Under the pieces are notes generated by a model. That model searched no databases. It saw only the letters and a program-made list of their open reading frames with translations, and was not told where the DNA came from. A program made the position numbers and the translations under genes. A stretch of DNA of 64,000 nt from IMG/VR virus record IMGVR_UViG_3300044972_002389, positions 186,001 through 250,000 of that record; one strand, 5' to 3'. Below, piece by piece: positions 8,248 through 51,626 of the stretch. Position 1 is the first letter of the stretch; each line of letters starts with the position of its first letter.

Positions 8248-8297
8248 TTTGGAAAACATGCGCCTTAACCCTGCATTGCGATAGCGAGGAAACATAC

Positions 8298-8696
8298 ATG
8301 ACTCGAAACGAGTTTGACGGTTACATTCGGCTGGTGTTCAGCAGCGCAAGCAATTGGCGCGGCGAAGACCACATTTGGTGGCCACATGGAACCGATCTCT
8401 ACTACGAGGTCACATGGATCACAGGTGGGATGACAGGGGGCAACTGTTGGGGGGACAGTGCTGAGCACAGTGTGAGCAGTGAGCCTGAGCCCTCTCTTGA
8501 ACTGCTGGATCAATTCTTGGATGAGGTGTGCCCAGATCTCACTGCTCGGCAGTATCGCCGGCTACTTGCAGAGGTTCCTTATCGAGACAGCTACACTGAC
8601 TACGAGTATTATGGCAACCACACCACACGTGGCAAGAAGGTTGTATCCTTCAAGGACCTCTACAAGTGGTTGTGCCAGGAAGTTTGGAAGTGCTGA
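8298..8696 (+). CDS. conserved phage hypothetical protein
   Basis: GAGGA RBS; W.TGG..GGNCWG...EYYGN motif. Confidence 0.7.
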   Translation: MTRNEFDGYIRLVFSSASNWRGEDHIWWPHGTDLYYEVTWITGGMTGGNCWGDSAEHSVSSEPEPSLELLDQFLDEVCPDLTARQYRRLLAEVPYRDSYTDYEYYGNHTTRGKKVVSFKDLYKWLCQEVWKC

Positions 8697-9097
8697 TTAC
8701 CTGTATCGCTGGCCTGCCCGGCAGTGGCAAAACCCATCTCATGGACAAGATTAGCGACCAATACCCACCGCTCAGAGCATGGGCGGTAGATGACATAACC
8801 GAGCTGGGGCAGTTGCCAGGAGTGCATGCTGTATTCCATCTTGACCATCTCATTATCGCCGATCCTCACTTCTGTAGAGAGAGCACCAGGGTACGTGCAG
8901 AGACTTTGCTGACGGGTTGGTATAACCGGCCCATAGAATGGATCTTTTTTGAGAACAATCCCCAACGATGCCGCGAGAACGTGCACTGTAGGAACGATCA
9001 ACGGAGGGTGTTGGGGATGATCCACATCCTAAGTCAACTCTATACCATTCCAGCAGGGGCTGATGTGCGGCCAGTATATTGTCGCATAGACTCATAA
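8690..9097 (+). CDS. P-loop kinase (polynucleotide kinase / AAA_33-like)
   Basis: Walker A GLPGSGKT near the N-terminus; C-terminal C..N..R lid pattern. Confidence 0.65.
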   Translation: MLITCIAGLPGSGKTHLMDKISDQYPPLRAWAVDDITELGQLPGVHAVFHLDHLIIADPHFCRESTRVRAETLLTGWYNRPIEWIFFENNPQRCRENVHCRNDQRRVLGMIHILSQLYTIPAGADVRPVYCRIDS

Positions 9098-9149: not shown

Positions 9150-10091
9150 ATGAAGAAAATACTTGTAACTGGTGGGGCTGGGTTTTTGGGCAGCCACTTG
9201 TGTGAAAGACTTGTGGCCCGAGGACACCATGTGCTGTGTGTGGACAACTATTTTACTGGATCAAAATCCAACATACAGCATTTGTTAAGCAGTTCCAATT
9301 TTGAGGTCATACGTCATGACGTCTGTGTGCCCTTATATGTGGAGGTAGATGAAATCTATAATCTTGCCTGTCCTGCAAGTCCCAAAAGTTATCAAAAAGA
9401 TCCTATTCAAACCATGAAAACCAGTTTTATGGGATCTTATAATCTATTAGGCTTGGCCAAACGCACAAAAGCAAAGATCTTTCAAGCCAGCACTAGCGAA
9501 ATTTATGGCGATCCTTTTGTTCATCCGCAACCAGAATCCTACTGGGGCAATGTAAATCCTCTGGGCCCGCGTGCCTGTTACGATGAAGGCAAACGTGCTG
9601 CTGAAACACTTTTTATGGACTATAACCGGCAACACAATGTTGACGTTCGGGTGGCTAGGATCTTCAACACCTACGGACCGCGCATGAGTGTTGATGATGG
9701 GAGAGTAGTTAGTAATTTTATTGTGCAGGCGTTACAAGGGCTGCCTTTGAGTGTGTATGGTGAAGGCACCCAAACACGTAGCTTCTGTTATGTTGATGAC
9801 CTAATTGATGGCATTTTGACATTGATGGAGTCCACATCTTCTGGCTCACAACCTGTGAATTTAGGCAATCCTCATGAGGTAACAGTCAGGAGCCTTGCAG
9901 AGCAAATCCAACGCCTCACAGGGTCCACTAGCCGGATTTTAAATTTACCGTTGCCTGTAGATGATCCACAACAGCGTCAAGCTGATATTACTAGAGCAAC
10001 AAGCATACTGGGTTGGGAGCCAAAAATCCCTCTTGAGCAAGGACTACAAAAAACTATAGCCTATTTCCAACAGGTGCTGACCAATGCCTAA
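9150..10091 (+). CDS. uxs: UDP-glucuronate decarboxylase (UDP-xylose synthase), NAD-dependent epimerase/dehydratase family
   Basis: [54 protein letters not shown] motifs. Confidence 0.92.
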
Positions 10092-10719
10092 GGTAACAAC
10101 CGCAGTTTTTATCAGTGGACGAGGCAGCAATCTCTTGAGCCTTCTCAAGGCACAAAATGATTCCCATTGCCCCTTTCAAATTCAATTGGTGGTTAGTAAC
10201 AATGAGGATGCGGGCGGATTGAAACTAGCACAAGATCATGGCGTGCAATGGGCAATCTTTCCCAACAGTGCGTACAAAAAAGATAGGGAAGGTCAAGAGG
10301 GGGCTATTCACCAACTTTTGGTGGAACAAAAGATTGAGCTAGTTGCGCTGGCTGGCTACATGCGGGTTTTGACTCCGTGGTTTGTTGCACAATGGAGTCA
10401 ACGAATTATCAATATTCATCCCAGCTTGTTGCCCAAATATCCTGGATTACACACTCACCAAAGGGCTTTGGCAGCAGGGGATCAAGAACACGGTTGCACG
10501 GTACACTATGTTACAAAAGTGTTGGATGCTGGTCCTATTATCCTACAAGCCAAGGTTCCTGTAGAGCCTGGAGATACAGAATCTGATTTGAGTCTTAGGG
10601 TATTGGTGCAAGAACACCTAATCTATCCCCAGGCATTGTCCTTGGTTTCCCAGCAACTCTGCGACAAAAAAATAGTGGGAGAAAAAGGCATTTCGCTGGA
10701 AAAACCGGTAGACAGCTGA
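10084..10719 (+). CDS. purN: phosphoribosylglycinamide formyltransferase
   Basis: [44 protein letters not shown] motifs. Confidence 0.95.
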
Positions 10720-10736
10720 GATGGTGATGCTATTAT
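10709..10736 (+). promoter_or_regulatory. early sigma70-type promoter
   Basis: TAGACA-16 bp-TATTAT with TGC extension. Confidence 0.65.
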
Positions 10737-10771
10737 GCGGTTGTAGGCAACGAAACAGAGGATGCTACACG

Positions 10772-11254
10772 ATGAACACCAAGCAGTTCAACATCATTGG
10801 TATTAGCCGCTTCCAGGGCGTGCTGACCTTCCGCGTTAGCAACGGCAGCATCAAGCACCGTGAGACTGTGCTGGCACGCGAAGGGCACACTGAGGTGCAG
10901 TTCAAGACCCTCCCGCAGCCCATGACCAAGGCTGATGCTGTGGCTTGGATGCGCAGCCAGGGCGTGGACGCTGTGGTGCCGGCCAAGAATCTCAAGAAGA
11001 AGATTGAGGCCATCTTGGCTGCTGAGCGGGAAGCTGCTGCTCAGAAGGCTGCCAAGGATTGGGCCGAGATGCAGACCAACAGCATGAGCAAGCTGGCTGC
11101 CAAGCGGGCCCGGGACGCTGCTCGCAAGCGGGAGAAGCGTGCTGCTGAGCGTGCGGCTCAAGAGGCTGCTAAGCAGCAGGGCATCAACCAGCTGATGGGG
11201 GCGGTTGACCAGGAGTTTGGGGTGGATGTGGAGCGTGAGCTGGCGGGGGAGTAA
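10772..11254 (+). CDS. conserved phage hypothetical protein with K/A/R-rich helical tail
   Basis: GAGGA RBS; GHTEVQFKTLPQPMTKADA motif. Confidence 0.75.
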   Translation: MNTKQFNIIGISRFQGVLTFRVSNGSIKHRETVLAREGHTEVQFKTLPQPMTKADAVAWMRSQGVDAVVPAKNLKKKIEAILAAEREAAAQKAAKDWAEMQTNSMSKLAAKRARDAARKREKRAAERAAQEAAKQQGINQLMGAVDQEFGVDVERELAGE

Positions 11255-11270
11255 GCAGAGGAATATGGAA

Positions 11271-11358
11271 CTGGTGGGGTGACGAACCCGTAAACCCAGT
11301 TTGACACCAAGAAAGCGGCTGGTGGGGTGATGAACCCGTAAACCCAGCCGCTTTCTTG
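11271..11358 (+). repeat. tandem 29-nt structured direct repeat (48-nt period); second copy enclosed in an 11-bp stem
   Basis: CTGGTGGGGTGAYGAACCCGTAAACCCAG at 11271-11299 and 11319-11347; CAAGAAAGCGG/CCGCTTTCTTG flanks. Confidence 0.85.
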
Positions 11359-11392
11359 TGAGTAAATAGGGGAACAAACAAAGGATGGGTCA

Positions 11393-11794
11393 GTGAGAGC
11401 AAGTGATTTTTTGTCGCCAAAAATTCAGTTAACTGAAAGCATAACTGGTAGCGAAATGCTGACTCTCTACAAAAGCATGCATCACGAAGAGCCCACTAAT
11501 CCTGCTATGGTCAACTGGATCAAAAGTCAAGACTGGGGCATAAAAATGATCAACCCGCAAGACTTTCCAGATCACTATGGTGATGTGCTGCCAGATGATC
11601 CTTTTAATCGGGTAATTGATATTGACGATGAGATTGTGAAAAAGCTAACCATCAAACTAGAGCGTGGAGAGCAAGTGGACCCTGTGATTATGGGACCAAA
11701 TGGCAGTGTTGTTGACGGCAACCACCGAGCGCAAGCTGCCAAGGAGGCTAGTGTAAGCATCTTGGCATATGTTCCCATGGGGCAAACTGTTTGA
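11393..11794 (+). CDS. ParB/Srx-like nuclease-domain protein, probably late and virion-packaged
   Basis: PVIM...VVDGNHRAQAA motif; TAAATA at 11363; MRASDF...LTE N-terminus. Confidence 0.75.
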   Translation: MRASDFLSPKIQLTESITGSEMLTLYKSMHHEEPTNPAMVNWIKSQDWGIKMINPQDFPDHYGDVLPDDPFNRVIDIDDEIVKKLTIKLERGEQVDPVIMGPNGSVVDGNHRAQAAKEASVSILAYVPMGQTV

Positions 11795-11825
11795 CGCAAG
11801 CTTGATAAGATCGCATACTTGACCC

Positions 11826-12824
11826 ATGAGCACATATCAAGAAGCTGGCGTTAACATAACTGCTGGAGAAGAGTTTGTTGACCAAATAAGGCCCTTGGCC
11901 CAATCCACACACCGAAAGGGCGTGTTGGGCACAATAGGCGGCTTTGGCGCAGTGTTTGACATCGGCAGCTTGGGCATGCGTGACCCCCTGCTGGTTAGCA
12001 CAACTGATGGCGTGGGAACAAAGCTGTCACTTGTCAAAGAGGCAGGCACACGCCTTCAAGGCTTGGGGCAAGACCTAGTTGCTATGTGTGTGAATGATCT
12101 TGTGACAACAGGTGCAACGCCACTTTATTTCTTGGACTATCTGGCTGTGAACAAGCTGGATCCCTCTACGCATGTTGATATCATAGAGGGCATTGCAGAA
12201 GCTTGCAGAACATCTGGTTGTGCACTAGTGGGCGGTGAAACAGCAGAAATGCCAGGAGTCTACAGCCCAGGCGATTTTGATTTGGCTGGATTCGCTGTGG
12301 GTGCTGTAGAGCGCAACAGGCTGCTTCCTAAAAATGTTTCTGTAGGTGATGCAGTAATTGCTCTGCCCAGCAGCGGAGTGCACAGCAATGGGTTCAGCCT
12401 CGTGAGGAAAATCCTTCACGACAGTGGCACAAGTCTTGATGCGCTTGTGCCTTGGGACCTTACAAAAACTTTTGGTCAAGTGTTATCTACTCCCACTGCC
12501 CTTTATGTCAGCACAATTTTGGAACTGCACACAAAAGGCCTACTTACGGCTGCTGCACACATCACTGGTGGAGGCCTGTATAGCAATCTCAAGCGTGTGT
12601 TGCCAAGTGATCTTGATTTTGAAAAAACCAGAGGTTGTCCGGTGCCTGAAGTATTTCGTTGGCTACAAACCGCAGGGCATGTCTCAGACACTGAAATGCA
12701 CTCTGTGTTCAATATGGGCGTGGGCATGTGTTTGATCTCCAACCAACCCAGCAAAGTAGTTGAGCTGTTGTGGGCGCAAGATCAAGCCTGTTACCTTATT
12801 GGGCATGTAATCAATAAGCGATGA
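11826..12824 (+). CDS. purM: phosphoribosylformylglycinamidine cyclo-ligase (AIR synthetase)
   Basis: YQEAGVNI, TDGVGTKL, VAMCVND, GGETAEMPG, SSGVHSNGFSL, HITGGG, FNMGVG motifs. Confidence 0.96.
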   Translation: MSTYQEAGVNITAGEEFVDQIRPLAQSTHRKGVLGTIGGFGAVFDIGSLGMRDPLLVSTTDGVGTKLSLVKEAGTRLQGLGQDLVAMCVNDLVTTGATPLYFLDYLAVNKLDPSTHVDIIEGIAEACRTSGCALVGGETAEMPGVYSPGDFDLAGFAVGAVERNRLLPKNVSVGDAVIALPSSGVHSNGFSLVRKILHDSGTSLDALVPWDLTKTFGQVLSTPTALYVSTILELHTKGLLTAAAHITGGGLYSNLKRVLPSDLDFEKTRGCPVPEVFRWLQTAGHVSDTEMHSVFNMGVGMCLISNQPSKVVELLWAQDQACYLIGHVINKR

Positions 12825-13018
12825 AGTATCGTGTGGAGATTTGGGAGGCAGTGCGTGGTTTAGAGCCCACTCTTATTCACGTATTGCTGTTCAACACCTT
12901 AGATGACGCCCTTACAAGAGCTAGATCCACTACCTTAGCCAACACCTTGCCTTTGGCTCCTGATTGGTACTCATTCAGTAAGGGACCATATGTTCAAACC
13001 GAAAGCATTACAATATGA
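12821..13018 (+). CDS. hypothetical protein
   Basis: ATGA overlaps at both ends. Confidence 0.55.
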   Translation: MKYRVEIWEAVRGLEPTLIHVLLFNTLDDALTRARSTTLANTLPLAPDWYSFSKGPYVQTESITI

Positions 13019-13914
13019 CCCTTCCTCACTTGCTGAGCATTGATCAGTTTGACCTCACAAGTATACACACATTATTCACAACTGTGAAAGGCATTGAACT
13101 GGGCCTCACCCAACCAGTAGCTCAAGGGAAGGTATGTACTAACCTCTTCTACGAGCCCAGCACACGCACCAGCAGTAGTTTTTATTCAGCCATGGTGCGG
13201 CTAGGTGGCGCTGTCATCCCCATCAATGATGTCAGCTTCAGCTCTGTCAGCAAGGGTGAGAACCTAGAAGACACTATTCGCACTTTGGCCAGCTATTCAG
13301 ACTGCATTGTGTTGCGCCATCCCGAAAAAGGGGCAGCTCAATGGGCTGCGGCTGTAAGTCCTGTTCCTATCATCAATGCAGGCGATGGAGTTGGTGAGCA
13401 TCCCACACAAGCTCTCCTAGACCTCTATACCATCCAGCGGCATGTGGGCTTGACTCGTCCCATTGACGTGTGCCTAATGGGTGACTTGCGTCATGGTCGA
13501 ACTGTGCACAGCCTCACCAGGTTACTGCGTCTATATGATGTGAGACTGCACATGGTGAGTCCACCAGGTCTGGAGATGCCGCAAGAACTCACAGAGGAAA
13601 CAGACAAGCTTTACACCAGCATTGACGAATGTGTGGACAAGGTGGATGTGATCTATGTTACCCGTGTGCAGAAGGAGCGGATTGCGCCGAATCTACAAAG
13701 CACGATGGGCAAGTATCAGCTCACTCCTCAGCACATGAGCCAGGCCAAGAGCAGCAGCATCATCATGCACCCTTTGCCGCGTGTTGACGAGCTGCCCAGC
13801 AGCTTGGACAGTGATCCCCGGGCCGTGTACTTCAAGCAGATGCGCTATGGTCTCTATGTGCGTCAAGCTATCTTTCTCCACATGTTCAGTGACAGCGTGC
13901 CTTGGAAGTTTTAG
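13015..13914 (+). CDS. pyrB: aspartate carbamoyltransferase catalytic subunit
   Basis: FYEPSTRT, SVSKGE, NAGDG.GEHPTQALLD, GDLRHGRTVHS, TRVQKER, MHPLPR motifs. Confidence 0.96.
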   Translation: MTLPHLLSIDQFDLTSIHTLFTTVKGIELGLTQPVAQGKVCTNLFYEPSTRTSSSFYSAMVRLGGAVIPINDVSFSSVSKGENLEDTIRTLASYSDCIVLRHPEKGAAQWAAAVSPVPIINAGDGVGEHPTQALLDLYTIQRHVGLTRPIDVCLMGDLRHGRTVHSLTRLLRLYDVRLHMVSPPGLEMPQELTEETDKLYTSIDECVDKVDVIYVTRVQKERIAPNLQSTMGKYQLTPQHMSQAKSSSIIMHPLPRVDELPSSLDSDPRAVYFKQMRYGLYVRQAIFLHMFSDSVPWKF

Positions 13915-13915
13915 G

Positions 13916-13943
13916 TTGACATCTAAACACTTCTCTGTATAGT
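13916..13943 (+). promoter_or_regulatory. early sigma70-type promoter
   Basis: TTGACA-16 bp-TATAGT. Confidence 0.75.
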
Positions 13944-13969
13944 GCGCTTGAATCCGCAAAGAGGCAACT

Positions 13970-14317
13970 ATGTTTGGCTTCATGAAAAGTTGGTTTACTC
14001 AGCCGTCTCTGTCCGTCAGATCCGCCCAGGATCTCAGCTACTTAGAGCTAATTGAAGAACTGCGAACCAGGGATGATATTGAAATCTTTGCCCGCTTGCG
14101 GTTTCGAGATCAGTGGGTGAAGAATTTTCACGAGAAAAATCCTGGTGCAAAAGTTCCAAGTGGTTTCCTCATGAGGTTTGGTGCACTGGACAGAGTGGCC
14201 TCAGAACGCATGCTGAAACTGATGAACGAACTCAGAGTCATGCGTGAGCTACCAGAAATCAGCCATGAAAAGCTGGAGAAGCACCTTGCGGGCTCCTATC
14301 CAAAGAGCATGCGATGA
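13970..14317 (+). CDS. hypothetical protein
   Basis: GAGG RBS. Confidence 0.6.
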   Translation: MFGFMKSWFTQPSLSVRSAQDLSYLELIEELRTRDDIEIFARLRFRDQWVKNFHEKNPGAKVPSGFLMRFGALDRVASERMLKLMNELRVMRELPEISHEKLEKHLAGSYPKSMR

Positions 14318-14490
14318 ACCAATTGATCGAGTTGAGTTTTTTCCTGCCCGAAATGGTTCTTTTTGGGGCAGGGCTATACACTTGGTATCATCTTTTCACC
14401 TCCATTGGAAAGTGGAGCTGGAAGCGAGTGGCTCTATACCTCTACGGTGCAGCTTGTGTCTACAGCCTTTGGATCATGGGTTACCAATAG
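14314..14490 (+). CDS. small two-TM membrane protein (not in ORF track)
   Basis: ATGA overlap; MNQLIELSFFLPEMVLFGAGLYTWYHLF...VALYLYGAACVYSLWIMGYQ. Confidence 0.55.
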   Translation: MNQLIELSFFLPEMVLFGAGLYTWYHLFTSIGKWSWKRVALYLYGAACVYSLWIMGYQ

Positions 14491-27054: not shown

Positions 27055-27888
27055 ATGAAACAGTTTGAACTCTCCCCACAATTAGTTTTTGAAGGCGGCA
27101 ACGTATTCAAAACCTCAGATGGCTATCCACGCACCACTCGTATCCCACTGGCTTTGATCAGTCCCACGTTGGATTGGCTGGAAAAAATCACAGGGCTGCC
27201 TATGCATGGCATGACCTTGGGCAGTGTTGGCAAAAAAGCCAGCAGTGGGGATATCGACATTGTAGTCGACAGCAAGAAAATGTCAAAAGCCCAATTTGCC
27301 CAAAGTCTCCAAAACTGGGTGTTGAGCCAAGGTTTGAACCCCAAAGAGTATGTGAAGCCTGCTGGAGAAGTTCATCTGTTGACACCAATTGCAGGTGATC
27401 CCAAGAATGGCTTCGTGCAAACTGACTTTTTCTTCCATGATGATCCTCAATGGATGAAATTCAGCATGCAGAGTCCAGGAGACGCCAGCAACTACACTGG
27501 TGCAGAAAGAAATCAACTCATGAGCAGTATTGCCAAAGCATTGGGAATGAAATACAGTTGGCAACGTGGACTGTTGAATCGGGAAGATGAATCTGTTATC
27601 TCCACTGATCCTGATGTGATTGCACAAAAGCTATTGGGGCCCAGATTCACTCACGACAGCTTCCAAAGTGTTGAAACTATTCAACGAGCCATCAAAGGCA
27701 ATAGGGCTATTCATCAAGGGTTGACTGAGTTGATTCAAACTCTAAGGAGCTTGGATAAATTAGGGCCCACTGGCAAACCCACAATGGATGTGAAAACTGG
27801 GAAGTTTAAGCAGAAATCTCCCAGTGAGCAACGCAAATCAGAAGAAGAAGCTGCAAGGATTGAGCAGTTGACAGGTGTAGCTGTTTAG
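27055..27888 (+). CDS. Pol-beta-superfamily nucleotidyltransferase-like protein, probably virion-packaged
   Basis: LGSVGKK..SGDIDIVVD (GS + DxD) and VQTDF third Asp; VFE/GGNVF N-terminus; TAAATA at 27042. Confidence 0.7.
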   Translation: MKQFELSPQLVFEGGNVFKTSDGYPRTTRIPLALISPTLDWLEKITGLPMHGMTLGSVGKKASSGDIDIVVDSKKMSKAQFAQSLQNWVLSQGLNPKEYVKPAGEVHLLTPIAGDPKNGFVQTDFFFHDDPQWMKFSMQSPGDASNYTGAERNQLMSSIAKALGMKYSWQRGLLNREDESVISTDPDVIAQKLLGPRFTHDSFQSVETIQRAIKGNRAIHQGLTELIQTLRSLDKLGPTGKPTMDVKTGKFKQKSPSEQRKSEEEAARIEQLTGVAV

Positions 27889-30104
27889 CTTTTGTTTCCG
27901 TATCGGGGATCAATTGGCTTGACATGAATCTGATCAAACAGCAGAGGAAAGTTGGGCAAAACTTTTGGTAGGTCTGTTCTCTCCAACCAATTGTAATTTA
28001 CGCTGCTGTGTGGAATGAAGTTGGGGAAATCGTGAGTTCCGCCCTTGCTCTTCAAATGATGATGAAATTTGTGTGCCAGGTCACAATCTAGGTCTAGGCA
28101 CAGGGCTTTGTCGCCCATTTTGGTCCAACCTTTTATTTGTGCTGGCACAACCACAGTGTTACCATGCATGCTCATGAGGTGAGGCACTGGTTTTTGGCTA
28201 TACAAAACAGTCATGTGAAGATCATCAGTATTCATACAGGGAACACCTTGACTTTCACACCATTCTTTGAGCTCTCGAGCATTTTTGGGACTCATGCTCA
28301 AAACAACTATGGTGCCAGCAGCGTGCTCATGAGCTTCCATTACTGTGTTCCTAGGGTGCTTGAGATAGCGTCGAACTGATTGGAACAGCCTATTGGAAAG
28401 TTCATCATCCAAACCCACAGCTTGGTGGAAAGCCTTTTTGTCTTTGTTCAAAACAGCCTCACGTGCCTTGGTGCCGCTTATTCCACTAACGCCAATGCCA
28501 TCTGGATGCCGTTCTCCAGCTGATACAATTTCAATCGTCACTGGTTGACGTTGATGTTTTTCACGTATTTCTGGACTGTTCCAAGAGTCAAAAAGGTCTT
28601 TCATGCCCTGCACACGATCTTCGCCGGCAACAAATACAAAATGTCTATAGCCTTTGTTGTAGAGCCATTCTGCGGCTTGCAGCGGAGTTTTGATGCTCTC
28701 ATCCTGCACCACATGATCTTGGTGTTGAGACATAATCTCTTGGAAAAACTCCAGCTTTTCCGCCCAAGGCAATGGATTCTTTTTTCCGTCTTGACTGTGA
28801 CTCAAAAAGATCCAATAGTCACCCTTGCCAGCGTGTTTGGCCATTGTGTTAACCAAGTGCTGATGACCACGAGTGGGAGGATTCATCCTCCCAAAGGTCC
28901 AAACTACCCGGTTGTGTTCTTGTTCCATCAATGAATCAGGCTCGCCTTTTCTCATAAATTGGGCACGATTTACAAACTTCACTATTCCAGTGGGAGTTAC
29001 AGCCACAAATCCCTCATGTCCTGGATCTCCACCCAAACTAGCACCCACTGTCCCATCTGTTTGACGGTCCATTTGTTTCTTGAGATCCAGCTTCAAACTT
29101 GTTAACAAACTTACTATCCGCCACACGCTATTGTAACCATGGATGTGGCTTTGAATCCATTTCAAACACTTGGCCTGCATTGCAGGGCTAGCAGTACTGT
29201 TGAGCCCTGTAAGCCACTCCAAAAACTCTCTACTCACATGGCTAAATGTGGAACTACCACGTTCTGCCTTTTTGGCCAAAAAGCTTTTCATCAAGCCAGG
29301 AAGGCTCAAGATTTCATGACTGGCTAGTTGTCCTCTGTCCAAAAATGATTTCACACTTACAGCATGCACTCTAAACAAGTGGGATAATTTGTCAACTAAG
29401 TTTTTATCCAGGTTCAAACTTTTGAGCATGGTGGCTTCATGAGGTAGGATAGCCAGTCCTTGATCAGTGCGAAAGCCATATTGACTAATGTTTCGCAAGG
29501 CTTCTGGTTCCTGATCTTCAGGGCTTTGATAAACACTGTGCATGACCACGCCAGCACTGCTGTTGGCAATCATTTCACCATATTGACTGTTGACAGGCAC
29601 ACGATAAGTTATTTTGTTGGGTGTAAATTCATATGCCCCATCTACAATGGGAGGTACACCAGTCCACAACAAATCCGCTTGAACGTAACCGATAAATCCT
29701 TTTGGGGTAACTTTTTTCAACAATGGGTAGAGACTGGCTATTTTGTTGGCATATGCCAGTCGAGCACTCTTTGCACTGGGGCTGGTGTCTTTCATTTTCC
29801 TGCTCATGAGCATATTGACAATATCCTCAGGGCTTGTGGTTAAACCATTGTATTTTTTACTGCTGAATCCAGCTTTGTCTGTTAACACAAATTTATAGTC
29901 TTTCCATCCAGAAATCAAGGCTGGTGTTCCATCCATTTTTATACTAACATACTCGGGTTGATGAGCAGTTGTGCTCAGTATATGAAAAGCTCTTTTGGCA
30001 CCATCTAACCCCTCATCGAAGATCATGTCTTCTGGATGCTCGATACGGGCTTTGGCCTCAGTCAAAGAGAGATTTACTACTGGTAATAAGTCAAACAGCT
30101 TCAT
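27885..30104 (-). CDS. three-domain protein: ligase-like KxDG domain + HIGH-class cytidyltransferase-like domain + Acb1/gp57B-like 2H phosphoesterase
   Basis: SIKMDGTPA...HEGFV; FGRMNPPTRGH...VAGEDR...SGTKAR; LHMTVLYS...GTHDFPNFIPHSSV; TAAATA at 30144-30149 (minus). Confidence 0.8.
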   Translation of the reverse strand: MKLFDLLPVVNLSLTEAKARIEHPEDMIFDEGLDGAKRAFHILSTTAHQPEYVSIKMDGTPALISGWKDYKFVLTDKAGFSSKKYNGLTTSPEDIVNMLMSRKMKDTSPSAKSARLAYANKIASLYPLLKKVTPKGFIGYVQADLLWTGVPPIVDGAYEFTPNKITYRVPVNSQYGEMIANSSAGVVMHSVYQSPEDQEPEALRNISQYGFRTDQGLAILPHEATMLKSLNLDKNLVDKLSHLFRVHAVSVKSFLDRGQLASHEILSLPGLMKSFLAKKAERGSSTFSHVSREFLEWLTGLNSTASPAMQAKCLKWIQSHIHGYNSVWRIVSLLTSLKLDLKKQMDRQTDGTVGASLGGDPGHEGFVAVTPTGIVKFVNRAQFMRKGEPDSLMEQEHNRVVWTFGRMNPPTRGHQHLVNTMAKHAGKGDYWIFLSHSQDGKKNPLPWAEKLEFFQEIMSQHQDHVVQDESIKTPLQAAEWLYNKGYRHFVFVAGEDRVQGMKDLFDSWNSPEIREKHQRQPVTIEIVSAGERHPDGIGVSGISGTKAREAVLNKDKKAFHQAVGLDDELSNRLFQSVRRYLKHPRNTVMEAHEHAAGTIVVLSMSPKNARELKEWCESQGVPCMNTDDLHMTVLYSQKPVPHLMSMHGNTVVVPAQIKGWTKMGDKALCLDLDCDLAHKFHHHLKSKGGTHDFPNFIPHSSVNYNWLERTDLPKVLPNFPLLFDQIHVKPIDPRYGNKS

Positions 30105-30224
30105 TGTTACGCCCCAACATAATCTTTTGGCAATCTATTGAATTATTTAACAGATCAAGGCGTCCATTTTGACTTCTTCTGTAACCAATTACAAAATTTA
30201 GGGTTTCAAACACAAAGGACTATA

Positions 30225-31070
30225 ATGGCATTGGTTCCCAAGATCAAATATCTAACAAACAAAGATTTATTGTCTGCAATCCATGAAAGTAAGCTTACTT
30301 TTTGTGAATTTGTTGACAAAAAATACACTGATTTTGATGTCATTGTATATGATCTTGCAGCAGCAACTCCAGAAGTTTTGGACGCTGCTCGACACAAAAA
30401 GCTAGCTAACAAAATGGCTGAAGAAAAGAAAGCCAGCGGCAGCAAGACTTTTGAATCTTCATTAACATTGGATAATGTGCCTTTGGATGAAATTGTTGTG
30501 AGGCTTATGACTTTTGTGCACATTCCGTTAAACCCTGCCAAAGCTGACAAAGCCAAAAATCAGGCAGAAAAACACATCAGATGCAATTTCCCTCCTTTTC
30601 AACATTGGATTTTCCAAAACAATGAATGGAAATGTGTGGGCAAGAGTCATCACAAAAAGGGTGAATTCACCTTAACTGGCGGTAGGATTACTGATAGACT
30701 GGCTGCTATGTGGATCAAATTGGTTGATCGCTATGGGCATAGAGGCAACTGGAGAGGTTACACTTATCTTGACGAAATGAAAGCGCAAGCACTGGTGCAA
30801 TTGGCACAAGTGGGACTTCAATTTGATGAAGCTAAAAGCTCAAACCCCTTTGCTTATTATACTACCGTAAGTAGTACAAGTTTTCTCAAGATATTACAAC
30901 TGGAAAAGAGAAGTCAACACATAAGAGATGATCTTTTGATCATGCATGGTGCAACACCCAGTCACACCCGACAGACCGAGGATCAGTTGGCACAACAACT
31001 GGGATTTGACAATGCAGAAGCAGCAGTCCCACTTGTTGTGCCCCAAATGAGCCCAACTGGCCCCATCTAG
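30225..31070 (+). CDS. late-transcription sigma factor (T4 gp55-like)
   Basis: KYLTNKDLL, NWRGYTYLDEMK, QFDEAKSSNPFAYYT motifs; AAGGA RBS before ATG 30225. Confidence 0.88.
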   Translation: MALVPKIKYLTNKDLLSAIHESKLTFCEFVDKKYTDFDVIVYDLAAATPEVLDAARHKKLANKMAEEKKASGSKTFESSLTLDNVPLDEIVVRLMTFVHIPLNPAKADKAKNQAEKHIRCNFPPFQHWIFQNNEWKCVGKSHHKKGEFTLTGGRITDRLAAMWIKLVDRYGHRGNWRGYTYLDEMKAQALVQLAQVGLQFDEAKSSNPFAYYTTVSSTSFLKILQLEKRSQHIRDDLLIMHGATPSHTRQTEDQLAQQLGFDNAEAAVPLVVPQMSPTGPI

Positions 31071-32788
31071 TATTTTTTGATCCACACTGCGTTGCCTGCA
31101 TCATAAAAACGATTGTAGCCCAAATTTTTGGCAATTTCTTGCTCTGTATTGCCCGCAGCTAAGCCTTGTATTTTGTGTTTTTGAAATTTAAGTCGGCTCT
31201 GAACGTCATTTATATTTTTCCAATACCAATAATTGGGTGGACTGATATGACTTAACTCAAAGCCTGTTTTTTCGTAACCATTTCCCAGTCCCCAGTTCAA
31301 GTTACTGTAGGACACCAAGCTTTTGAATCCCAACTCCTGATGTGCATGATTCAAAAGCTTGCTAAGCCCTCCTGGCACATGATACCCAGGCAAAATACAA
31401 TAACGGGCCAGCTCATAATCACTCCCTTTGCTATACCTAGTTTTGACAAAGCTAGCAAGTGCAACAAGCGACCCGTTGTGTTCCAAACCCCAAATATGTT
31501 TGGTTGGTATGTTGCCCTGCAAGTGTGAGTTCTGAATAAATGTTTTAGCTGTTCCAAAATCCACAACTGTAATGTTGCATTTACGTGCACCAACAATTGT
31601 TTTTTTCAAACCCACTACGTGTGACAATCTGTCAAATATAATATTGGGTTTTTGCACCATCTCATGTTCCCAAATTTGAACAAGCCTTACACCTTTTTCA
31701 AGAGCTTGTTTCCATTTATTTTGATGATATTTTTTGTCTCCTATTTGGCAATCTGAATGATAAAAGATGCCATTAAACTCAATACCCACATTTAAATCTG
31801 GAAGATAAAAGTCAATCTCCAATGGCTTGATAACTTGCCTATTCCATTGCTCAAAAGATATGTTATTATCCCACAACCATTGTTTGATCTTTGTTTCTCC
31901 CCAACTTTCTTTTCTTGGATAACAAGCAAAACAACGCAAATCAGATTCTCTTTTCAAGGCAACACTGAATTGGTTATGGCATTTTTGGCAAACAAACGAA
32001 TGTTCAGAATAACGATGTGAGTCCAAAAATTCTTCTTGAGTGAATAACGGAGTGTAATCAGTCCTATTTGTAATATAGGAATCCCAAGATTTTTGCCGAA
32101 AAGTTTTCCTATTGGTCTCCCTATGCTCTGTTGTCAAAAACGGGGCCACAACACCATATTTTGAGAGGTTGGTTTTTTTGGTTTTAACTAACACCTCCAG
32201 GTTTTGAGCAGGAACAGGTGCTCCATAAGTGTTTTGAAACACCTCTATAGTTTTGGTTCTTATATCAGGATGTTGCTGAGGAAAGTTTACTCCCCAATTT
32301 TCCTGGATCGTTTTTTGTGCTTTGTCTAAAACAACAGGATTTAAGGTTGGAGCTTTTGCGCCATACTTTTCAAAACATGTGGTCTCAGCTTTGGCTTTGA
32401 CCTTGTCATGTTGACTTGCATACTCAAAACCATACTTTTGAAGGTTGGTATTTTTACGTTTTTCGTGAATATGATTTATTTCATCTCTAGTGCGGCTGTG
32501 TCGAACGCTTTCCTGATATTCACGATTACAGGAGCATTGAGATTGATTACCACAGAATTTTCTGAACCCTAGAACCATATTATTGAAAGTCCTGAACTTA
32601 CCACTCTGTTCACACCAACTGTTTTCTGCATTAGTGTTATGAACGTATGCATAAAATTTAGCTGCAATTGGGCCTTCACAAGGAAATAATTTGTCTAGCT
32701 CTTCTTTGTGTATAGGCAACAACTTTGTCAACCTATTTGGTGTAATCTCCTTGTTCAACCAAAGTTCTTTCAATTCTGCCAAATTCAC
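31067..32788 (-). CDS. free-standing putative homing endonuclease (KYG repeats + Vsr/PD-(D/E)xK-like domain + GNAT-like tail)
   Basis: T...KYG repeats; EIDFYLPD...GIEFNGIFYHS; L.QIWEHE; ARKC; YDAGN. Confidence 0.75.
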   Translation of the reverse strand: MNLAELKELWLNKEITPNRLTKLLPIHKEELDKLFPCEGPIAAKFYAYVHNTNAENSWCEQSGKFRTFNNMVLGFRKFCGNQSQCSCNREYQESVRHSRTRDEINHIHEKRKNTNLQKYGFEYASQHDKVKAKAETTCFEKYGAKAPTLNPVVLDKAQKTIQENWGVNFPQQHPDIRTKTIEVFQNTYGAPVPAQNLEVLVKTKKTNLSKYGVVAPFLTTEHRETNRKTFRQKSWDSYITNRTDYTPLFTQEEFLDSHRYSEHSFVCQKCHNQFSVALKRESDLRCFACYPRKESWGETKIKQWLWDNNISFEQWNRQVIKPLEIDFYLPDLNVGIEFNGIFYHSDCQIGDKKYHQNKWKQALEKGVRLVQIWEHEMVQKPNIIFDRLSHVVGLKKTIVGARKCNITVVDFGTAKTFIQNSHLQGNIPTKHIWGLEHNGSLVALASFVKTRYSKGSDYELARYCILPGYHVPGGLSKLLNHAHQELGFKSLVSYSNLNWGLGNGYEKTGFELSHISPPNYWYWKNINDVQSRLKFQKHKIQGLAAGNTEQEIAKNLGYNRFYDAGNAVWIKKY

Positions 32789-33947: not shown

Positions 33948-35725
33948 ACTTGATCATCCTCAAAAACGTCACAATCAAAAACTTCATGAGTGTGGGTGCT
34001 GTTACACAATCAGTTACTCTCACACAACCTGGCTTGACTCTTGTATTGGGCGAGAATCTAGACTTGGGCGGCAACGGCAACCGGAATGGTGTTGGCAAAT
34101 CGACGCTGATTTCAGCCATTTGTTATGCCCTGTATGGTCAAGCTCTTACTAACATCAAGAAAAACAATCTCATCAACAGCATCAACAAAAAGAACATGGT
34201 GGTGAGTATTGAGTTTGAAGCCCACGGCAACAGCTACAAAATTGAACGTGGCCGTGCCCCTAGTTTTTTCCGCTATGTTGTAAATGATGAATCAGTAAAT
34301 GAAAACAAAAGTGCAGACGAAGCTCAAGGCGAAAACAAAGATACTCAGAAAGAGATTGAGAAGGTATTGGGCATCAGCCACACCATGTTCAAACACATTG
34401 TGGCTTTGAACACCTATACTGAGCCATTTTTGAGCATGGGTGCTGGAAAACAGCGAGAAATAATTGAAGAGCTGTTGGGAATTACATTACTGTCTCAGAA
34501 GGCAGAAAACCTCAAAAAGCTTATTCAAACAACCAAACAAACTATTGAACAAGAAGAGTTCAAAATACATACTATCAAAAACAGCAATACACGTATTTTG
34601 AGCACTATTGAAAGTTTGAATCAAAAAACCCAACAGTGGGATACTCAACATCAGAACAAAATTCAAGACTTGGAAAATGCACTAGATGCTTTGAGTCATC
34701 TTGATGTTGAGCAGGAAATTCAAAGTCACAAAGACAATCTTGTGTATCGTGAACTTCAAACAGCATTGAAGAATGTGCGCAGCCAAAGCCAAACAAAAAC
34801 ACAGCATGGAACACAGCTGAAGGCGCAACAAAACAACTGGTTAACTCAGTATAGTCAAATTCAAGACCACAACTGCGCAATGTGTGGTCAAAAGATTCAT
34901 GACGAGAAACAAACACATCTGCTGGACGACCTTGAGCACAAAATTACCAAACTGGACAGCAGCATTCAAACACTGGAACAGGAATGCCTGAGTTTGACAC
35001 AAGAACTGGATGAGCTCATGGGTCTGTCTAGTGCTGTATCGCTAAACCAAACATTTTACAAAAGCATTGATGAGGCATATGAGCATCGAAACAGTCTCAC
35101 ACTTCTTAGTGGTGAACTGGACAAACTTAAGCTTGAAACCAATCCTTATCAAGCCCAAGTGGGTAATTTAAATGACACACTGCAAGAAGTCACTTATGAT
35201 TCACTAAATGAACTCAGCCAACTCAAAGACCATCAAGAGTTTCTCTTGAAGCTGCTAACAAACAAAGACAGCTTCATCCGAAAGCGTATTATTGATCAAA
35301 ACCTCAGCTACTTGAATCACAGACTGGGTGAATATCTAGCTGGATTGATGTTGCCACACCAAGTTAAATTCAGCAACGACTTGGGAGTTGAGATCATGCA
35401 TATGGGCGTAGACTTTGACTTTGACAGTCTCAGCCGAGGTGAACGCACAAGAGTTTGTTTGGCACTCAGCTGGGCATTCCGAGACATTTTTGAAAACATG
35501 AACACCAGCATCAACTTCATGGCTGTTGATGAGATCCTTGATGTGGGACTTGACAGCACAGGACTTGAAAGATCTCTAGAGACGCTTAAGGCTATGAGCA
35601 GAGATCGGAACAAGAACATTTTGTTGATCTCACATAGAGAAGAGCTAACAAGTCGCTGCGATCGAGTTTTGTATGTTATCAAAGAGTTAGGTTTCACTCG
35701 TTTCAGCTATGAAAGCGGTGAGTAA
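33944..35725 (+). CDS. recombination ATPase subunit (T4 gp46 / SbcC / Rad50-like)
   Basis: NGVGKST Walker A, CAMCGQ zinc hook, LSRGE signature, VDE Walker B, ISH. Confidence 0.93.
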   Translation: MNLIILKNVTIKNFMSVGAVTQSVTLTQPGLTLVLGENLDLGGNGNRNGVGKSTLISAICYALYGQALTNIKKNNLINSINKKNMVVSIEFEAHGNSYKIERGRAPSFFRYVVNDESVNENKSADEAQGENKDTQKEIEKVLGISHTMFKHIVALNTYTEPFLSMGAGKQREIIEELLGITLLSQKAENLKKLIQTTKQTIEQEEFKIHTIKNSNTRILSTIESLNQKTQQWDTQHQNKIQDLENALDALSHLDVEQEIQSHKDNLVYRELQTALKNVRSQSQTKTQHGTQLKAQQNNWLTQYSQIQDHNCAMCGQKIHDEKQTHLLDDLEHKITKLDSSIQTLEQECLSLTQELDELMGLSSAVSLNQTFYKSIDEAYEHRNSLTLLSGELDKLKLETNPYQAQVGNLNDTLQEVTYDSLNELSQLKDHQEFLLKLLTNKDSFIRKRIIDQNLSYLNHRLGEYLAGLMLPHQVKFSNDLGVEIMHMGVDFDFDSLSRGERTRVCLALSWAFRDIFENMNTSINFMAVDEILDVGLDSTGLERSLETLKAMSRDRNKNILLISHREELTSRCDRVLYVIKELGFTRFSYESGE

Positions 35726-35810
35726 TTATCTGTACTCCATAAATATAGATATATGCCGGTCACGACCCTGGCAGGTCCACCGGCTCTATCGCTTTAAGGG
35801 AGCAACAGCT

Positions 35811-36635
35811 ATGTCTATTTATCGTAATATCAAACCCTTTGGGTTTTATGTGTATGCCTACTTAAGAAAAACAACATCCAACAATGGTCCTGCAGGAACC
35901 CCTTATTATATTGGAAAAGGGACCGGCATACGTTACAAAGAAAACCACGGAACTCTACCTGTACCAAAAGAAGCATGGAGGATTGTTGTCCTTGAACAAG
36001 GATTAACTAATCTTGGTGCTGTTGCGCTCGAAAGAAGGCTGATACTCTGGTGGGGACGCCTGGATAATAACACAGGTATATTACACAATCGAACTGATGG
36101 CGGGGATGGGGCAGTTGGGAAGATAGTCTCTGATGAATCAAGAATGAAAGCAAGTGTTAACAATTGTGGCAAAAAAAGAAGTGCAGAAACAATCAAGAAC
36201 ATAAAAGATGCATTATCTCTTATCGACAGGTCAGGAGAGAATCATCCGTTATATGGCAAAAAGCATTCTGATGAAGCTAGATCTAAAATGAGCGAAGCTA
36301 AAAAAGGCAGGTCCTATGAAGAAATTTATGGCCCAAAAGCAGAAGAGATGCGAGCTGCACGCTCACAAAAATCTCGGGGACGAAGTCTGTCTGCTGAGAC
36401 CAAAGAAAAGATAAGTTTAGCAAATCGAGGCAAGAAAAAACCTGCAGGCTTTGGAGTCCGAATGTCCGCAGTAAGGTCTGGCCAAAAAGTCTCTGAAGAA
36501 ATTTTGAAGAAGAGAGCACAGATATTCGAAGCAACAAAACAAACTTGTGAACATTGCGGGAATATCTTTGGTTTAGCGAACTATATCAGATGGCATGGTC
36601 CTAATTGCAAAACTCAACCTAACCAACTACTATAG
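35811..36635 (+). CDS. GIY-YIG homing endonuclease with NUMOD3 repeats (Seg-like)
   Basis: FYVYAYLR...PYYIGKG..R, L.N.TDGGDG, GKKHSDEARSKMS; GGGAG RBS before ATG 35811; TAAATA at 35740. Confidence 0.88.
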   Translation: MSIYRNIKPFGFYVYAYLRKTTSNNGPAGTPYYIGKGTGIRYKENHGTLPVPKEAWRIVVLEQGLTNLGAVALERRLILWWGRLDNNTGILHNRTDGGDGAVGKIVSDESRMKASVNNCGKKRSAETIKNIKDALSLIDRSGENHPLYGKKHSDEARSKMSEAKKGRSYEEIYGPKAEEMRAARSQKSRGRSLSAETKEKISLANRGKKKPAGFGVRMSAVRSGQKVSEEILKKRAQIFEATKQTCEHCGNIFGLANYIRWHGPNCKTQPNQLL

Positions 36636-50264: not shown

Positions 50265-51626
50265 ATGGCTAATAGCAAGCTGTTGAAGGTAATGGATTAC
50301 CTTATCAACGAGCAAGAAGACAAGGCTCGTGACCTGTTGCACCAAATCTTCATTGAGAAGGCACGTGCAATTCACGAGGAAATGCTAAGTGACGACGAGC
50401 ATGAAATGGACAGGGACGAGGGCAGAAATCTCGGAGATGACATTGAATTTCACAAAGAAGAAATTGAGAATGAAGAGCATTATGGCGACGGCACAATGGA
50501 AGATGTTGACCTCGATGACGCGGTTGAAGATCTCACAGTAAGTGCTGGCGATGATGAAGATGCTGACGATGTTGATGTTGACGTGGAAGACGATGACATA
50601 GACATGGACGCTGAAGACGACATGGACGATGAAGACGACATGGACGATGAAGAAATGGATGCTGATGAAGCTGAAATGGATGCAGACATGGACCACGACG
50701 AGGAAGCTGAAGGCGAGCGTCTAAAAGACATTGAGCAAGCAATTGAAGAGTTGACTGCTGAATTTGAAGCTATGAAGGCTGAACTACATGGTGAACATGG
50801 TGATGCAGAGGGAGATAAAATGCCCCTGCAGGAAATGGCAGATTCGGGCACTACGCCTGGTGGTAAACAGTACAAAATTAGCGGCGATTTTGAAACCGTG
50901 ACTGTTAATGGAACTTCTTACCCAATCCGCAAACTGAGTGGTCAAGGGGACAACCCCGACTACGTAATAGATGACATCCATATTGGTCAAACATATCAGG
51001 ACATGCCACACCCTGACGCGGATGAGGAAGACTATGAGGAAGAATATGAAGTCTGGACAGAAGCACCAGGACAAGCAGATAACACCCTACACGTTGGTAC
51101 GTGGGATGAGTGCTGGAACTTTTTAATTGATCAACTAGGAAGTGAAGACCATTCGCGTTTGAAAAGACGCCTACAGCGCGATGCTAGCGGTGGTGGCATG
51201 AGAGAAGGCTGGATGGACAACACTGACGACCTTGATGAAGACTATGATGATCTTGATGAAGCCATTGCCCTCGATACAGTTCATGTTGATCTCAAGAAAG
51301 TTGGCGAAGTTGGCTCAGGAAAGTTTTCTCGTAGTGATGTAAGCAAGCATAGCCCAGTGCCCAAAGGCGTTCAAAGCCCTGTTCCAGGTGCCAAGCCAGT
51401 TGTGACAGGCAAGGGATCAAAGGCTGATGGATATCATCTTCAATCTGCCCCCACAAGTGCCAGTATGAACTTGTCCAACCGTCGCAAGAAGGCTAGTGAA
51501 GACATGACTCATGTCAGCAAGGAAGGCAGCACAAAGGCCATGTTGAACAAAGATCGTTCAGAAGGTTTTGGCGCCGCCAACGTTCGCAGCCCACTGGGCA
51601 GCACCGGCACAACACCAAAGAAGTAA
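50265..51626 (+). CDS. acidic prohead core protein
   Basis: LINE...KA..L.H.IFIEKAR.I.E head, D/E-rich linker, upstream of the protease; TAAATA at 50221; AAGGAG RBS. Confidence 0.7.
   Translation: MANSKLLKVMDYLINEQEDKARDLLHQIFIEKARAIHEEMLSDDEHEMDRDEGRNLGDDIEFHKEEIENEEHYGDGTMEDVDLDDAVEDLTVSAGDDEDADDVDVDVEDDDIDMDAEDDMDDEDDMDDEEMDADEAEMDADMDHDEEAEGERLKDIEQAIEELTAEFEAMKAELHGEHGDAEGDKMPLQEMADSGTTPGGKQYKISGDFETVTVNGTSYPIRKLSGQGDNPDYVIDDIHIGQTYQDMPHPDADEEDYEEEYEVWTEAPGQADNTLHVGTWDECWNFLIDQLGSEDHSRLKRRLQRDASGGGMREGWMDNTDDLDEDYDDLDEAIALDTVHVDLKKVGEVGSGKFSRSDVSKHSPVPKGVQSPVPGAKPVVTGKGSKADGYHLQSAPTSASMNLSNRRKKASEDMTHVSKEGSTKAMLNKDRSEGFGAANVRSPLGSTGTTPKK

Follow-up and report, generated by a model that had tools for sequence, protein, structure and literature searches.

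A head-targeted polyprotein of three predicted enzyme modules, including Acb1, inferred from the genome of a lake-water T4-related jumbo phage

Analysis of a 64,000-nucleotide stretch of the virus record IMGVR_UViG_3300044972_002389 (positions 186,001 to 250,000 of that record, hereafter the window) led to a single ORF of three domains, whose surroundings are listed in Table 1. The phage is related to T4, and the DNA sequencing runs are all lake-water metagenomes. The ORF starts with ATG and contains no internal stop. Pfam assigned the three domains to DUF6267 (residues 21-384, E-value = 2e-27), CTP_transf_like (residues 403-549, E-value = 7e-6, above the cut-off) and Acb1 (PF23474; residues 597-733, E-value = 1.2e-18, 67.6 bits against a cut-off of 27). 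An earlier note, made from the sequence alone, had described ligase-like, HIGH-nucleotidyltransferase and Acb1-like domains separated by prohead-protease-type sites, and this observation is confirmed. Specifically, the motifs were located at LTE 14-16, KMDG 56-59, EGFV 364-367, LME 392-394, FGRMNPPTRGH 404-414, VME 588-590, HMT 630-632, GTHDF 689-693 and HSS 699-701. More than 60 homolog clusters have the same three-domain architecture. However, a nucleotide search of the locus against isolated phages found nothing, and no isolated phage in that collection has the three-domain fusion.

Table 1. Features of the polyprotein locus and of the head genes encoded in the same window (positions are those of the window).
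Feature	Position	Strand	Description
TAAATA element	30144-30149	-	Late-promoter-like, 45 nt upstream of the ATG
Polyprotein ORF	27885-30104	-	739 aa, 83 kDa (stop codon included)
Leader	30057-30104	-	aa 1-16 (MKLFDLL...LTE), capsid-targeting-sequence-like, ending in site 1 (L14-T-E16)
Module 1	28923-30056	-	aa 17-394, DUF6267, ligase-like nucleotidyltransferase candidate, 41.8 kDa, pI 9.2; its last three residues are site 2 (L392-M-E394, nt 28923-28931)
Module 2	28335-28922	-	aa 395-590, HIGH-type adenylyl/cytidylyltransferase, 22.7 kDa, pI 8.8; its last three residues are site 3 (V588-M-E590, nt 28335-28343)
Module 3	27888-28334	-	aa 591-739, Acb1-type 2H phosphodiesterase, 16.8 kDa
Convergent neighbour	27055-27888	+	277 aa, Pol-beta/Pol-X-like nucleotidyltransferase with its own leader
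Sigma factor	30225-31070	+	gp55-like late sigma factor, divergent from the polyprotein gene
Prohead protease	51767-52399	+	T4 gp21 family (Peptidase_S77), presumed processing enzyme
Scaffold-like protein	52418-53623	+	Prohead core protein rich in [LIV]-x-E
Major capsid protein	53631-54845	+	Gp23 family

Apart from the Pfam match, module 3 matched the PDB Acb1 entry 7t26 (E-value = 1e-8) and, by BLASTP, the T4 protein 57B (E-value = 7e-14). Both H-x-[TS] motifs of the 2H fold are present (H630-M-T632 and H699-S-S701), with H630 and H699 being invariant in 30 homologs, while the best Foldseek hits were 7t27 and 7t26 (E-value about 2e-8, TM 0.68-0.69 on the target). Concerning module 2, the T411-x-G-H414 and I542-S-G-T-K-A-R548 motifs are conserved and place it in the HIGH-nucleotidyltransferase superfamily. 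The NMNAT class proposed in the earlier note is not supported beyond this level, as the score against the curated equivalog TIGR00482 was only 15 bits against a cut-off of 112.45 and the fold matched PPAT, NaMNAT, NMNAT and FMNAT about equally.

The ligase-like character of module 1 rests on conserved motifs and weak fold hits only. K56, D58 and G59 are invariant, and E364, G365 and K376 are at least 90% conserved, in the order expected for motifs I, IV and V of covalent nucleotidyltransferases. Although hhalign placed HEGFVAV on the T4 Rnl1 segment IEGYVAV, the probability was below 1% against both T4 Rnl1 and the T4 DNA ligase gp30. Pfam gave only DUF6267, and a profile search against PDB gave no ligase, only spurious helical matches (seryl-tRNA kinase and Cas12). 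The model of this module is confident (pLDDT 88), but Foldseek against PDB gave no hit at an E-value of 0.001 or better, the best ligase hits having E-values of 0.03-0.06 or weaker and TM of 0.25 or less. Nevertheless, ligases recurred as the nearest non-family folds in both PDB and BFVD.

The three [LV]-x-E sites were examined in more detail. In this single protein the motif is not more frequent than chance, with 5 [LIV]-x-E against 7.8 expected. Across the family, however, it clearly is more than chance: in 40 homologs (42-83% identity) E16, E394 and E590 mark the only conserved [LIVM]-x-E columns (34, 33 and 37 of 40, next best 12). Both linkers carry the motif in 40 of 40 homologs, against 7.9 and 10.8 expected from within-linker shuffles, although the flanking linker columns are variable (about 2.5-3.3 bits of entropy). 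Conversely, the motif is depleted inside the folded domains (157 observed against 254 expected, with 35 of 40 homologs below expectation). It should be noted that [LIV]-x-E is short and that the homologs are related, so the shuffle statistics overstate independence. In the AlphaFold model the only low-pLDDT segments are residues 1-4, 8-19 (below 50), 388-396, 584-592 and the C-terminal tail, and the pTM of 0.49 together with high domain pLDDT suggests independent beads. Longer homologs insert extra modules exactly at linker 1 or linker 2, each with [LIV]-x-E on both sides. Additionally, all 41 diverse DUF6267 proteins that have the IEHPED motif carry [LIVM]-x-E 1-5 residues before it, including cases where DUF6267 is the second module.

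The leader ends in the first of these sites. Its family consensus is MKLxxLF...LxE, with L14 and E16 invariant in a narrower set of homologs (A3), and it resembles the capsid-targeting sequences of T4 IPI, IPII and IPIII as read from NC_000866, even though this is a pattern match and not a statistical one. A strict leader pattern found only the target, but reading of the N-termini showed that the convergent neighbour carries the same kind of leader (MKQFELSPQLVFE, then GGNVFK), and it is likely a second head-targeted cargo. This Pol-beta-like module is fused upstream of DUF6267 in another lineage, a family of ~614 aa. A very strong hhalign match between the DUF6267 alignment and the neighbour's family is not homology between the two domains, since it comes from the N-terminal module of the ~614-aa fusion proteins included in that alignment. 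The G[FY]VQxD[FL] motif that they share therefore remains unexplained.

The window also encodes head proteins. The prohead protease was identified by PF03420 (79.5 bits) and phrog_207 (E-value = 1.8e-56), the scaffold-like protein has 25 [LIV]-x-E motifs (9.4-9.5 expected, z = 5.9) and the major capsid protein has 5 in its N-terminal propeptide region. It is known that gp21 cuts after L/I-X-E and that the T4 leaders are capsid-targeting sequences (PMC9026906). TAAATA occurs only 20 times on both strands of the window, and 15 of these copies lie within 100 nt upstream of a same-strand gene start, where about 1.2 would be expected. The genes concerned include the portal, the protease, virion proteins and the polyprotein gene. 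The adjacent gp55-like sigma factor (phrog_12791, E-value = 1.5e-76) is found in conserved synteny in two other sequences of the comparison (L005 and L006), and the conserved neighbourhood includes proteins whose PA5oct homologs are annotated as found in virions by mass spectrometry. PA5oct itself lacks the cassette at the syntenic site.

Stand-alone homologs provide indirect evidence from virions. Cytidyltransferases of Kyanoviridae and of phage Melnitz start with a 9-residue leader ending in I-x-E, and BLAST aligned the I-I-E of the Melnitz leader (gp18) to L392-M-E394 of the target. One of these proteins, the 362-aa S-SZBM1_140, was detected by mass spectrometry in CsCl-purified virions of cyanophage S-SZBM1, while the leaderless DUF6267 gene next to it does not occur in the text examined of that paper (PMC9146016). 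Cytidyltransferase or NMNAT-like proteins were also found in S-CREM2, S-CBWM1 and S-SCSM1 virions (PMC10665884), although the authors of the S-CREM2 paper caution that abundant enzymes may co-purify with virions. Moreover, the leaderless stand-alone adenylyltransferase at the same locus in phage Phosso and the leaderless cyanophage DUF6267 show that these enzymes can also work without head targeting, and T4's own Acb1 (57B) has no cleavable leader.

Taken together, these data support the hypothesis of the earlier note that the gene encodes a cargo polyprotein, probably late-expressed, that is packaged in the head and cut apart, and every computational test that could have refuted this central idea came out in its favor. 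We give it a probability of about 0.6, every step being inferred. In this scenario the leader targets the precursor to the scaffolding core of the prohead, and the gp21-family serine protease cuts after Glu16, Glu394 and Glu590, removing the leader and releasing three separate, mostly basic enzymes inside the capsid. Like T4 Alt and IPI, these would leave the capsid with the DNA and be present in the next host before any phage gene is expressed. The Acb1 module would then destroy cyclic-oligonucleotide immune signals of the CBASS type from time zero, whereas modules 1 and 2, together with the Pol-beta-like neighbour, would carry out a linked but still unidentified nucleotide or nucleic-acid-end reaction. 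The counter-defence role proposed in the earlier note rests on Acb1 homology alone.

Among the alternatives, the one that survives best, although unlikely, is that the modules are packaged and cleaved as above but serve nucleic-acid end repair rather than destruction of immune signals. Module 3 would heal ends as a 2',3'-cyclic or 3'-phosphoesterase, module 1 would seal them, the Pol-beta/Pol-X-like neighbour would fill in or add nucleotides and module 2 would supply or transfer an adenylyl group, with tRNAs cut by host anticodon nucleases, or nicks and ends in the injected genome, as possible substrates. The domain order parallels fungal Trl1, whose kinase-CPDase structure 6u05 appeared at rank 6, though with very low TM-scores. 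LigT and CPDases are the next 2H hits after Acb1, PHROG 755 is named 'RNA ligase', the Pol-beta-like neighbour is fused to DUF6267 in another lineage, and DUF6267 and the cytidyltransferase are neighbours or fused across Kyanoviridae even where no Acb1 is present. On the other hand, module 3 scores best with Acb1 by both sequence and fold, the central domain is not a P-loop kinase and the ligase identity of module 1 is not statistically established.

Less likely still is an ordinary cytoplasmic multidomain enzyme, never cleaved or packaged, in which the conserved L-x-E motifs would be linker or domain-capping features or docking motifs. Multidomain RNA-repair enzymes of similar layout exist (Trl1), T4 Acb1 and T4 Rnl1 do not appear to be virion proteins, and there is no direct evidence of cleavage. 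However, this reading does not explain why the same motif ends an N-terminal leader, brackets every inserted module, precedes DUF6267 and is depleted inside domains, nor the T4-like leaders and virion detection of stand-alone homologs or the TAAATA element shared with structural genes. Finally, a mainly non-enzymatic head-internal carrier or core role for DUF6267, with the other modules as attached cargo, is doubtful, because although this virus-only family is fused to many unrelated partners (Cu/Zn superoxide dismutase, cytidyltransferase, ParB_N, Acb1 and the Pol-beta-like module) and showed no significant similarity to any solved enzyme, its K56, D58, G59, E364, G365 and K376 and the invariant H23, E25 and D26 look catalytic, ligases recur as its nearest non-family folds, and in S-SZBM1 the leader-bearing neighbour was detected while the leaderless DUF6267 protein does not occur in the text examined.

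Known Acb1 proteins are made after infection starts, so a pre-packaged Acb1 would remove that delay. More tentatively, T4-related aquatic and jumbo phages may share a modular system in which leader-tagged enzyme modules (Acb1, DUF6267, HIGH-nucleotidyltransferase, Pol-beta-like NTase, ParB_N, SodC and unknown modules) are joined by prohead-protease sites, shuffled between lineages, unpacked inside the capsid and injected as a ready-made counter-defence or repair kit, which would confer anti-CBASS activity before any phage gene is transcribed. Literature searches on DUF6267, packaged Acb1 and prohead-protease polyproteins found nothing relevant. The leader plus [LIV]-x-E joints give a simple sequence rule for finding head-delivered enzymes in uncultured T4-related phages, offer an explanation of why 'cytidyltransferase' keeps turning up in cyanophage virion proteomes, and would tie three uncharacterised viral families (DUF6267, the phage cytidyltransferase and the Pol-beta-like neighbour) into one functional unit. 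The same logic could also be used for protein delivery by engineered phages, as has been done with the T4 capsid-targeting sequence.

Comparison with known systems reveals several partial parallels. The fungal and plant tRNA ligase Trl1 has the same order of a ligase-like N-terminal domain, a central nucleotide-binding domain and a C-terminal 2H phosphoesterase, but here the central domain is a HIGH nucleotidyltransferase, the 2H domain is closest to Acb1 and the linkers carry protease-type sites. In giant phages (phiKZ gp175, SPN3US) a gp21-related protease cuts many head-internal proteins after Glu at a short motif, sometimes at several sites (PMC9026906). The phiKZ and SPN3US motifs are their own, and the substrates described there are inner-body and ejection proteins, not a defined string of recognisable enzymes. 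The Kyanoviridae cytidyltransferase (S-SZBM1_140, S-CREM2 ORF154) and its DUF6267 neighbour are homologs of modules 2 and 1 (E-value = 2e-23 and about 1e-19), but they are separate, adjacent genes without an Acb1 module and are treated in the literature as auxiliary metabolic genes of unknown role. Known Acb1 proteins (T4 gp57B and phage FBB1 Acb1, PDB 7t26/7t27) are stand-alone proteins of about 150 aa, while here Acb1 is the C-terminal module of a polyprotein inferred to be head-targeted and is preceded by a protease-type site. The T4 internal proteins and Alt are shared in theme but not in sequence, as there is no sequence homology to the IPs or to Alt. The cargo here includes Acb1 and nucleotidyltransferases instead of small DNA-binding proteins or an ADP-ribosyltransferase, three enzymes lie in one precursor with internal sites at the domain boundaries, and the modules are shuffled between lineages as separate leader-bearing genes or as polyproteins. 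In common with the T4 proteins are the short N-terminal leader ending in [LI]-x-E, the gp21-family protease and T4-type head module in the same genome, the late-promoter-like motif and the mostly basic mature products inferred here, with Alt as a precedent for a large enzyme as cargo and IPI* for a counter-defence role (PMC3012670).

The ORF described in the earlier note exists exactly as described, as a 739-aa reading frame with an ATG start, and each of the motifs that the note assigned to it was found at its residue. Profile searches confirmed the three domains, namely DUF6267 (residues 21-384, E-value = 2e-27), CTP_transf_like (residues 403-549, E-value = 7e-6, above the cut-off) and Acb1 (residues 597-733, E-value = 1e-18), hereafter modules 1, 2 and 3. 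PHROGs returned "cytidyltransferase" and a 2H family named "RNA ligase", while the solved Acb1 of phage FBB1 matched at an E-value of 1e-8. The window carries a T4-type late and structural gene set. Specifically, a gp55-like late sigma factor is located right next to the gene, together with portal, tail-fibre, baseplate-hub and virion proteins, a gp21-family prohead protease (Peptidase_S77), a scaffold-like protein and a Gp23-family capsid protein. The capsid protein is closest to those of jumbo phages, with Sinorhizobium phage Phosso presenting 77% identity and the Pseudomonas PA5oct group 69%. The locus recurs in many lake-water metagenomes, although no isolated phage in the collection searched has the three-domain fusion. 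Three homing-endonuclease-like genes were also noticed within the 64 kb. Two of them are paralogs of the same PHROG (3339/559; the first one also matches DUF7487), and one of these sits between the gp55-like gene and the SbcCD genes. Additionally, a run of host-like metabolic genes was recognized, by eye only, comprising a GxxGxxG epimerase/dehydratase-like start at 9150 and PurN-like and PurM-like N-termini at 10084 and 11826.

Coordinates of the features discussed in the text, in the window and in the genomes compared with it
Sequence	Position	Strand	Feature
Window	27885-30104	-	Three-domain polyprotein ORF
Window	27055-27888	+	Convergent neighbour
Window	27885-27888		Overlapping stop codons of the two convergent genes
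Window	29664-29690		GYVQADLLW motif of module 1
Window	19390, 27042, 43873, 49930	+	TAAATA elements close to the called ATG
Window	50265-51626	+	Extremely acidic protein
Window	51767-52399		Prohead protease
Window	31067-32788	-	Homing-endonuclease-like gene
Window	55885-57504	-	Homing-endonuclease-like gene
Window	35709-36635	+	Homing-endonuclease-like gene
Window	9150-13914	+	Run of host-like metabolic genes
T4 (NC_000866)	13592-14411		Acb1 gene 57B next to ipI
Phosso	8249-8791		Stand-alone adenylyltransferase
Melnitz	2932-9248		Genes 15-20, with leader-like N-termini

The earlier note had also proposed that the domains are separated by prohead-protease-type [LV]-x-E sites. In this one protein the motif count is unremarkable (5 against 7.8 expected), but the family settles the question. 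More than 60 clusters of homologs with the same architecture exist, at 42-99% identity, on contigs up to 476 kb. In 40 of them, E16, E394 and E590 are the three top [LIVM]-x-E columns (34, 33 and 37 of 40, respectively), while the next best column reaches 12. The two linkers vary in length and sequence (entropy of about 2.5-3.3 bits per column), yet the hydrophobic position and the Glu stand out, and every homolog has the motif in each linker, against 7.9 and 10.8 expected from shuffling each linker. Inside the folded domains, on the contrary, the motif is depleted (157 against 254 expected), and the two internal copies of the target (IRE at 513-515 and LKE at 612-614) lie inside confidently modelled helices. 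The full-length AlphaFold model has low confidence only at residues 1-4, 8-19, 388-396, 584-592 and the C-terminal tail, which contain exactly the three sites, and its low pTM with good domain pLDDT suggests independent domains. Concerning modularity, homologs of 800-1070 aa carry extra segments exactly at linker 1 or linker 2, each with [LIV]-x-E on both sides, one of these segments being ParB_N-like. Two of the sequences examined, P0068 and P0072, place a 390-aa module, with its own leader, in front of L-T-E followed by AKARIDHPED. All 41 diverse DUF6267 proteins with the IEHPED motif have the site 1-5 residues upstream of it, and the stand-alone cytidyltransferases of this clade begin with M-[KF]-[LI]-T-[DE]-L-F-E.

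The gp21 protease cuts after L/I-X-E, and the T4 leaders are capsid-targeting sequences in which residues 4 and 7 direct targeting and residues 8 and 10 direct processing (PMC9026906). Other presumed substrates are present in the window. The scaffold-like protein has 25 motifs against about 9.5 expected (z = 5.9), the capsid protein has five in its N-terminal propeptide region and the protease itself has two near its N-terminus. Just upstream of the protease lies a 453-aa, extremely acidic protein without any family hit, which has a TAAATA element and an I-N-E motif at residues 14-16 and is a candidate prohead core or internal protein. In the T4 record, IPII and IPIII begin with MKTYQEFIAE followed by A, and IPI begins with MKTFKEFTSTTTPVSTITE followed by A. 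The target begins with MKLFDLLPVVNLSLTE followed by A, and shares with them Met-Lys, an aromatic residue at position 4, a hydrophobic residue at position 7, and [LI]-x-E then Ala. The T4 Acb1 gene 57B lies directly next to ipI, and its N-terminus (MMEFKDFST) resembles the IPI leader (MKTFKEFTST) but has no following L-x-E site, which may be a remnant of a head-targeted ancestor or a coincidence.

The convergent neighbour, a 277-aa protein with no Pfam or PHROG hit, begins with MKQFELSPQLVFE, a T4-CTS-like leader of 13 residues ending in V-F-E, followed by GGNVFK. In its family, 74 of 76 members end a 12-13-residue leader with the motif immediately before GGN[IV]FK, and only the target and this neighbour, of the 79 ORFs in the window, start this way. 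The neighbour has a Pol-beta/Pol-X-type signature (GS, then G-D-h-D-h; GS...GDIDI in this protein) and its structure look-alikes include NTP_transf_2 and Pol X. In a ~614-aa family it is fused in front of DUF6267 through I-[FV]-E followed by G, which links it functionally to module 1. Module 1 and the neighbour also share a G-[FY]-V-Q-x-D-[FL]-[FL] motif (GYVQADLLW in module 1 and GFVQTDFFF at aa 119-127 of the neighbour), built on invariant or near-invariant residues in both families, although homology between the two domains was not demonstrated, because the strong hhalign hit had another cause. The stop codons of the two convergent genes overlap (TTAG read on both strands), so there is no room for a terminator between them, and the tail-to-tail overlap is kept in the homolog loci L005 (4 bp) and L006 (14 bp).

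In Kyanoviridae and in Methylophilales phage Melnitz, the DUF6267 and cytidyltransferase genes are adjacent but separate. The cytidyltransferases start with MRFRQFIIE then A (S-WAM1, S-SZBM1) and with MKKFSEIIE then A (Melnitz). BLAST aligned the I-I-E of the Melnitz leader with L392-M-E394 of the target, and the internal site of the fusion is therefore positionally equivalent to the leader cleavage site of the stand-alone protein. Six consecutive Melnitz genes (15-20), including the DUF6267 and cytidyltransferase genes, all begin with leader-like peptides ending in [ILM]-x-E within the first 8-13 residues, suggesting a whole block of head-targeted proteins. Published proteomics is available for some of these relatives. 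The 362-aa S-SZBM1 protein (S-SZBM1_140) and its 457-aa neighbour were detected in CsCl-purified virions (PMC9146016), while the leaderless DUF6267 gene next to them does not occur in the portion of that report examined, which did not cover its whole table. S-CREM2 ORF154 is likewise virion-associated, and NMNAT-like proteins are reported in S-CBWM1 and S-SCSM1 virions, although the authors caution about possible co-purification (PMC10665884).

TAAATA occurs 20 times on both strands of the window, and 15 copies lie within 100 nt upstream of a same-strand start, including the portal (33 nt), the protease (37 nt), the acidic core-like protein (44 nt), virion proteins (36 nt) and the target (45 nt). 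A subset of these elements sits only 11-13 nt before the called ATG, too close for a normal leader with a ribosome-binding site, and either these starts are miscalled or these late mRNAs are nearly leaderless. Synteny study showed that two diverged homolog loci keep the same order, that is SbcCD, gp55-like gene, polyprotein, convergent neighbour, two virion proteins and gp5-like hub. PA5oct lacks the cassette, but its flanking homologs are annotated as detected in virions by MS. At the syntenic position next to the gp55-like gene, Phosso has a stand-alone 180-aa adenylyltransferase homologous to module 2, without a leader and with ATAAATA about 13 nt upstream of its ATG.

Module 3 is Acb1-like by sequence and by fold, ahead of LigT and CPDases, and has both H-x-[TS] motifs. 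Module 2 is a HIGH-type nucleotidyltransferase with TxGH and ISGTKAR. Its fold matches PPAT, NaMNAT, NMNAT and FMNAT about equally and it does not satisfy the NMNAT equivalog model, and thus its substrate is not resolved to the NMNAT type suggested in the earlier note. Module 1 is confidently modelled (pLDDT 88) and has invariant K56-x-D58-G59 and near-invariant E364-G365 and K376, but presents no significant sequence or fold match to a solved protein. Ligases are the recurrent nearest non-family folds in PDB and BFVD, and hhalign places HEGFVAV on the Rnl1 segment IEGYVAV. The label "ligase-like", also used in the earlier note, is therefore reasonable but unproven. DUF6267 is virus-only and is fused to varied partners.

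These data are best explained by a head-targeted, protease-unpacked enzyme polyprotein with Acb1 as cargo, its cleavage, packaging and enzyme activities being inferred, a reading to which we assign a probability of about 0.6. A less likely possibility is that the same delivery mechanism serves RNA or DNA end repair, and an uncleaved cytoplasmic enzyme appears more doubtful still. That DUF6267 is a mere carrier is the least likely of these readings. In the literature that could be searched, we found no description of the multi-enzyme polyprotein layout, the module shuffling or the capsid delivery of Acb1. The mechanism itself, however, has precedents, and the proposed polyprotein is of the T4 internal-protein/Alt kind.
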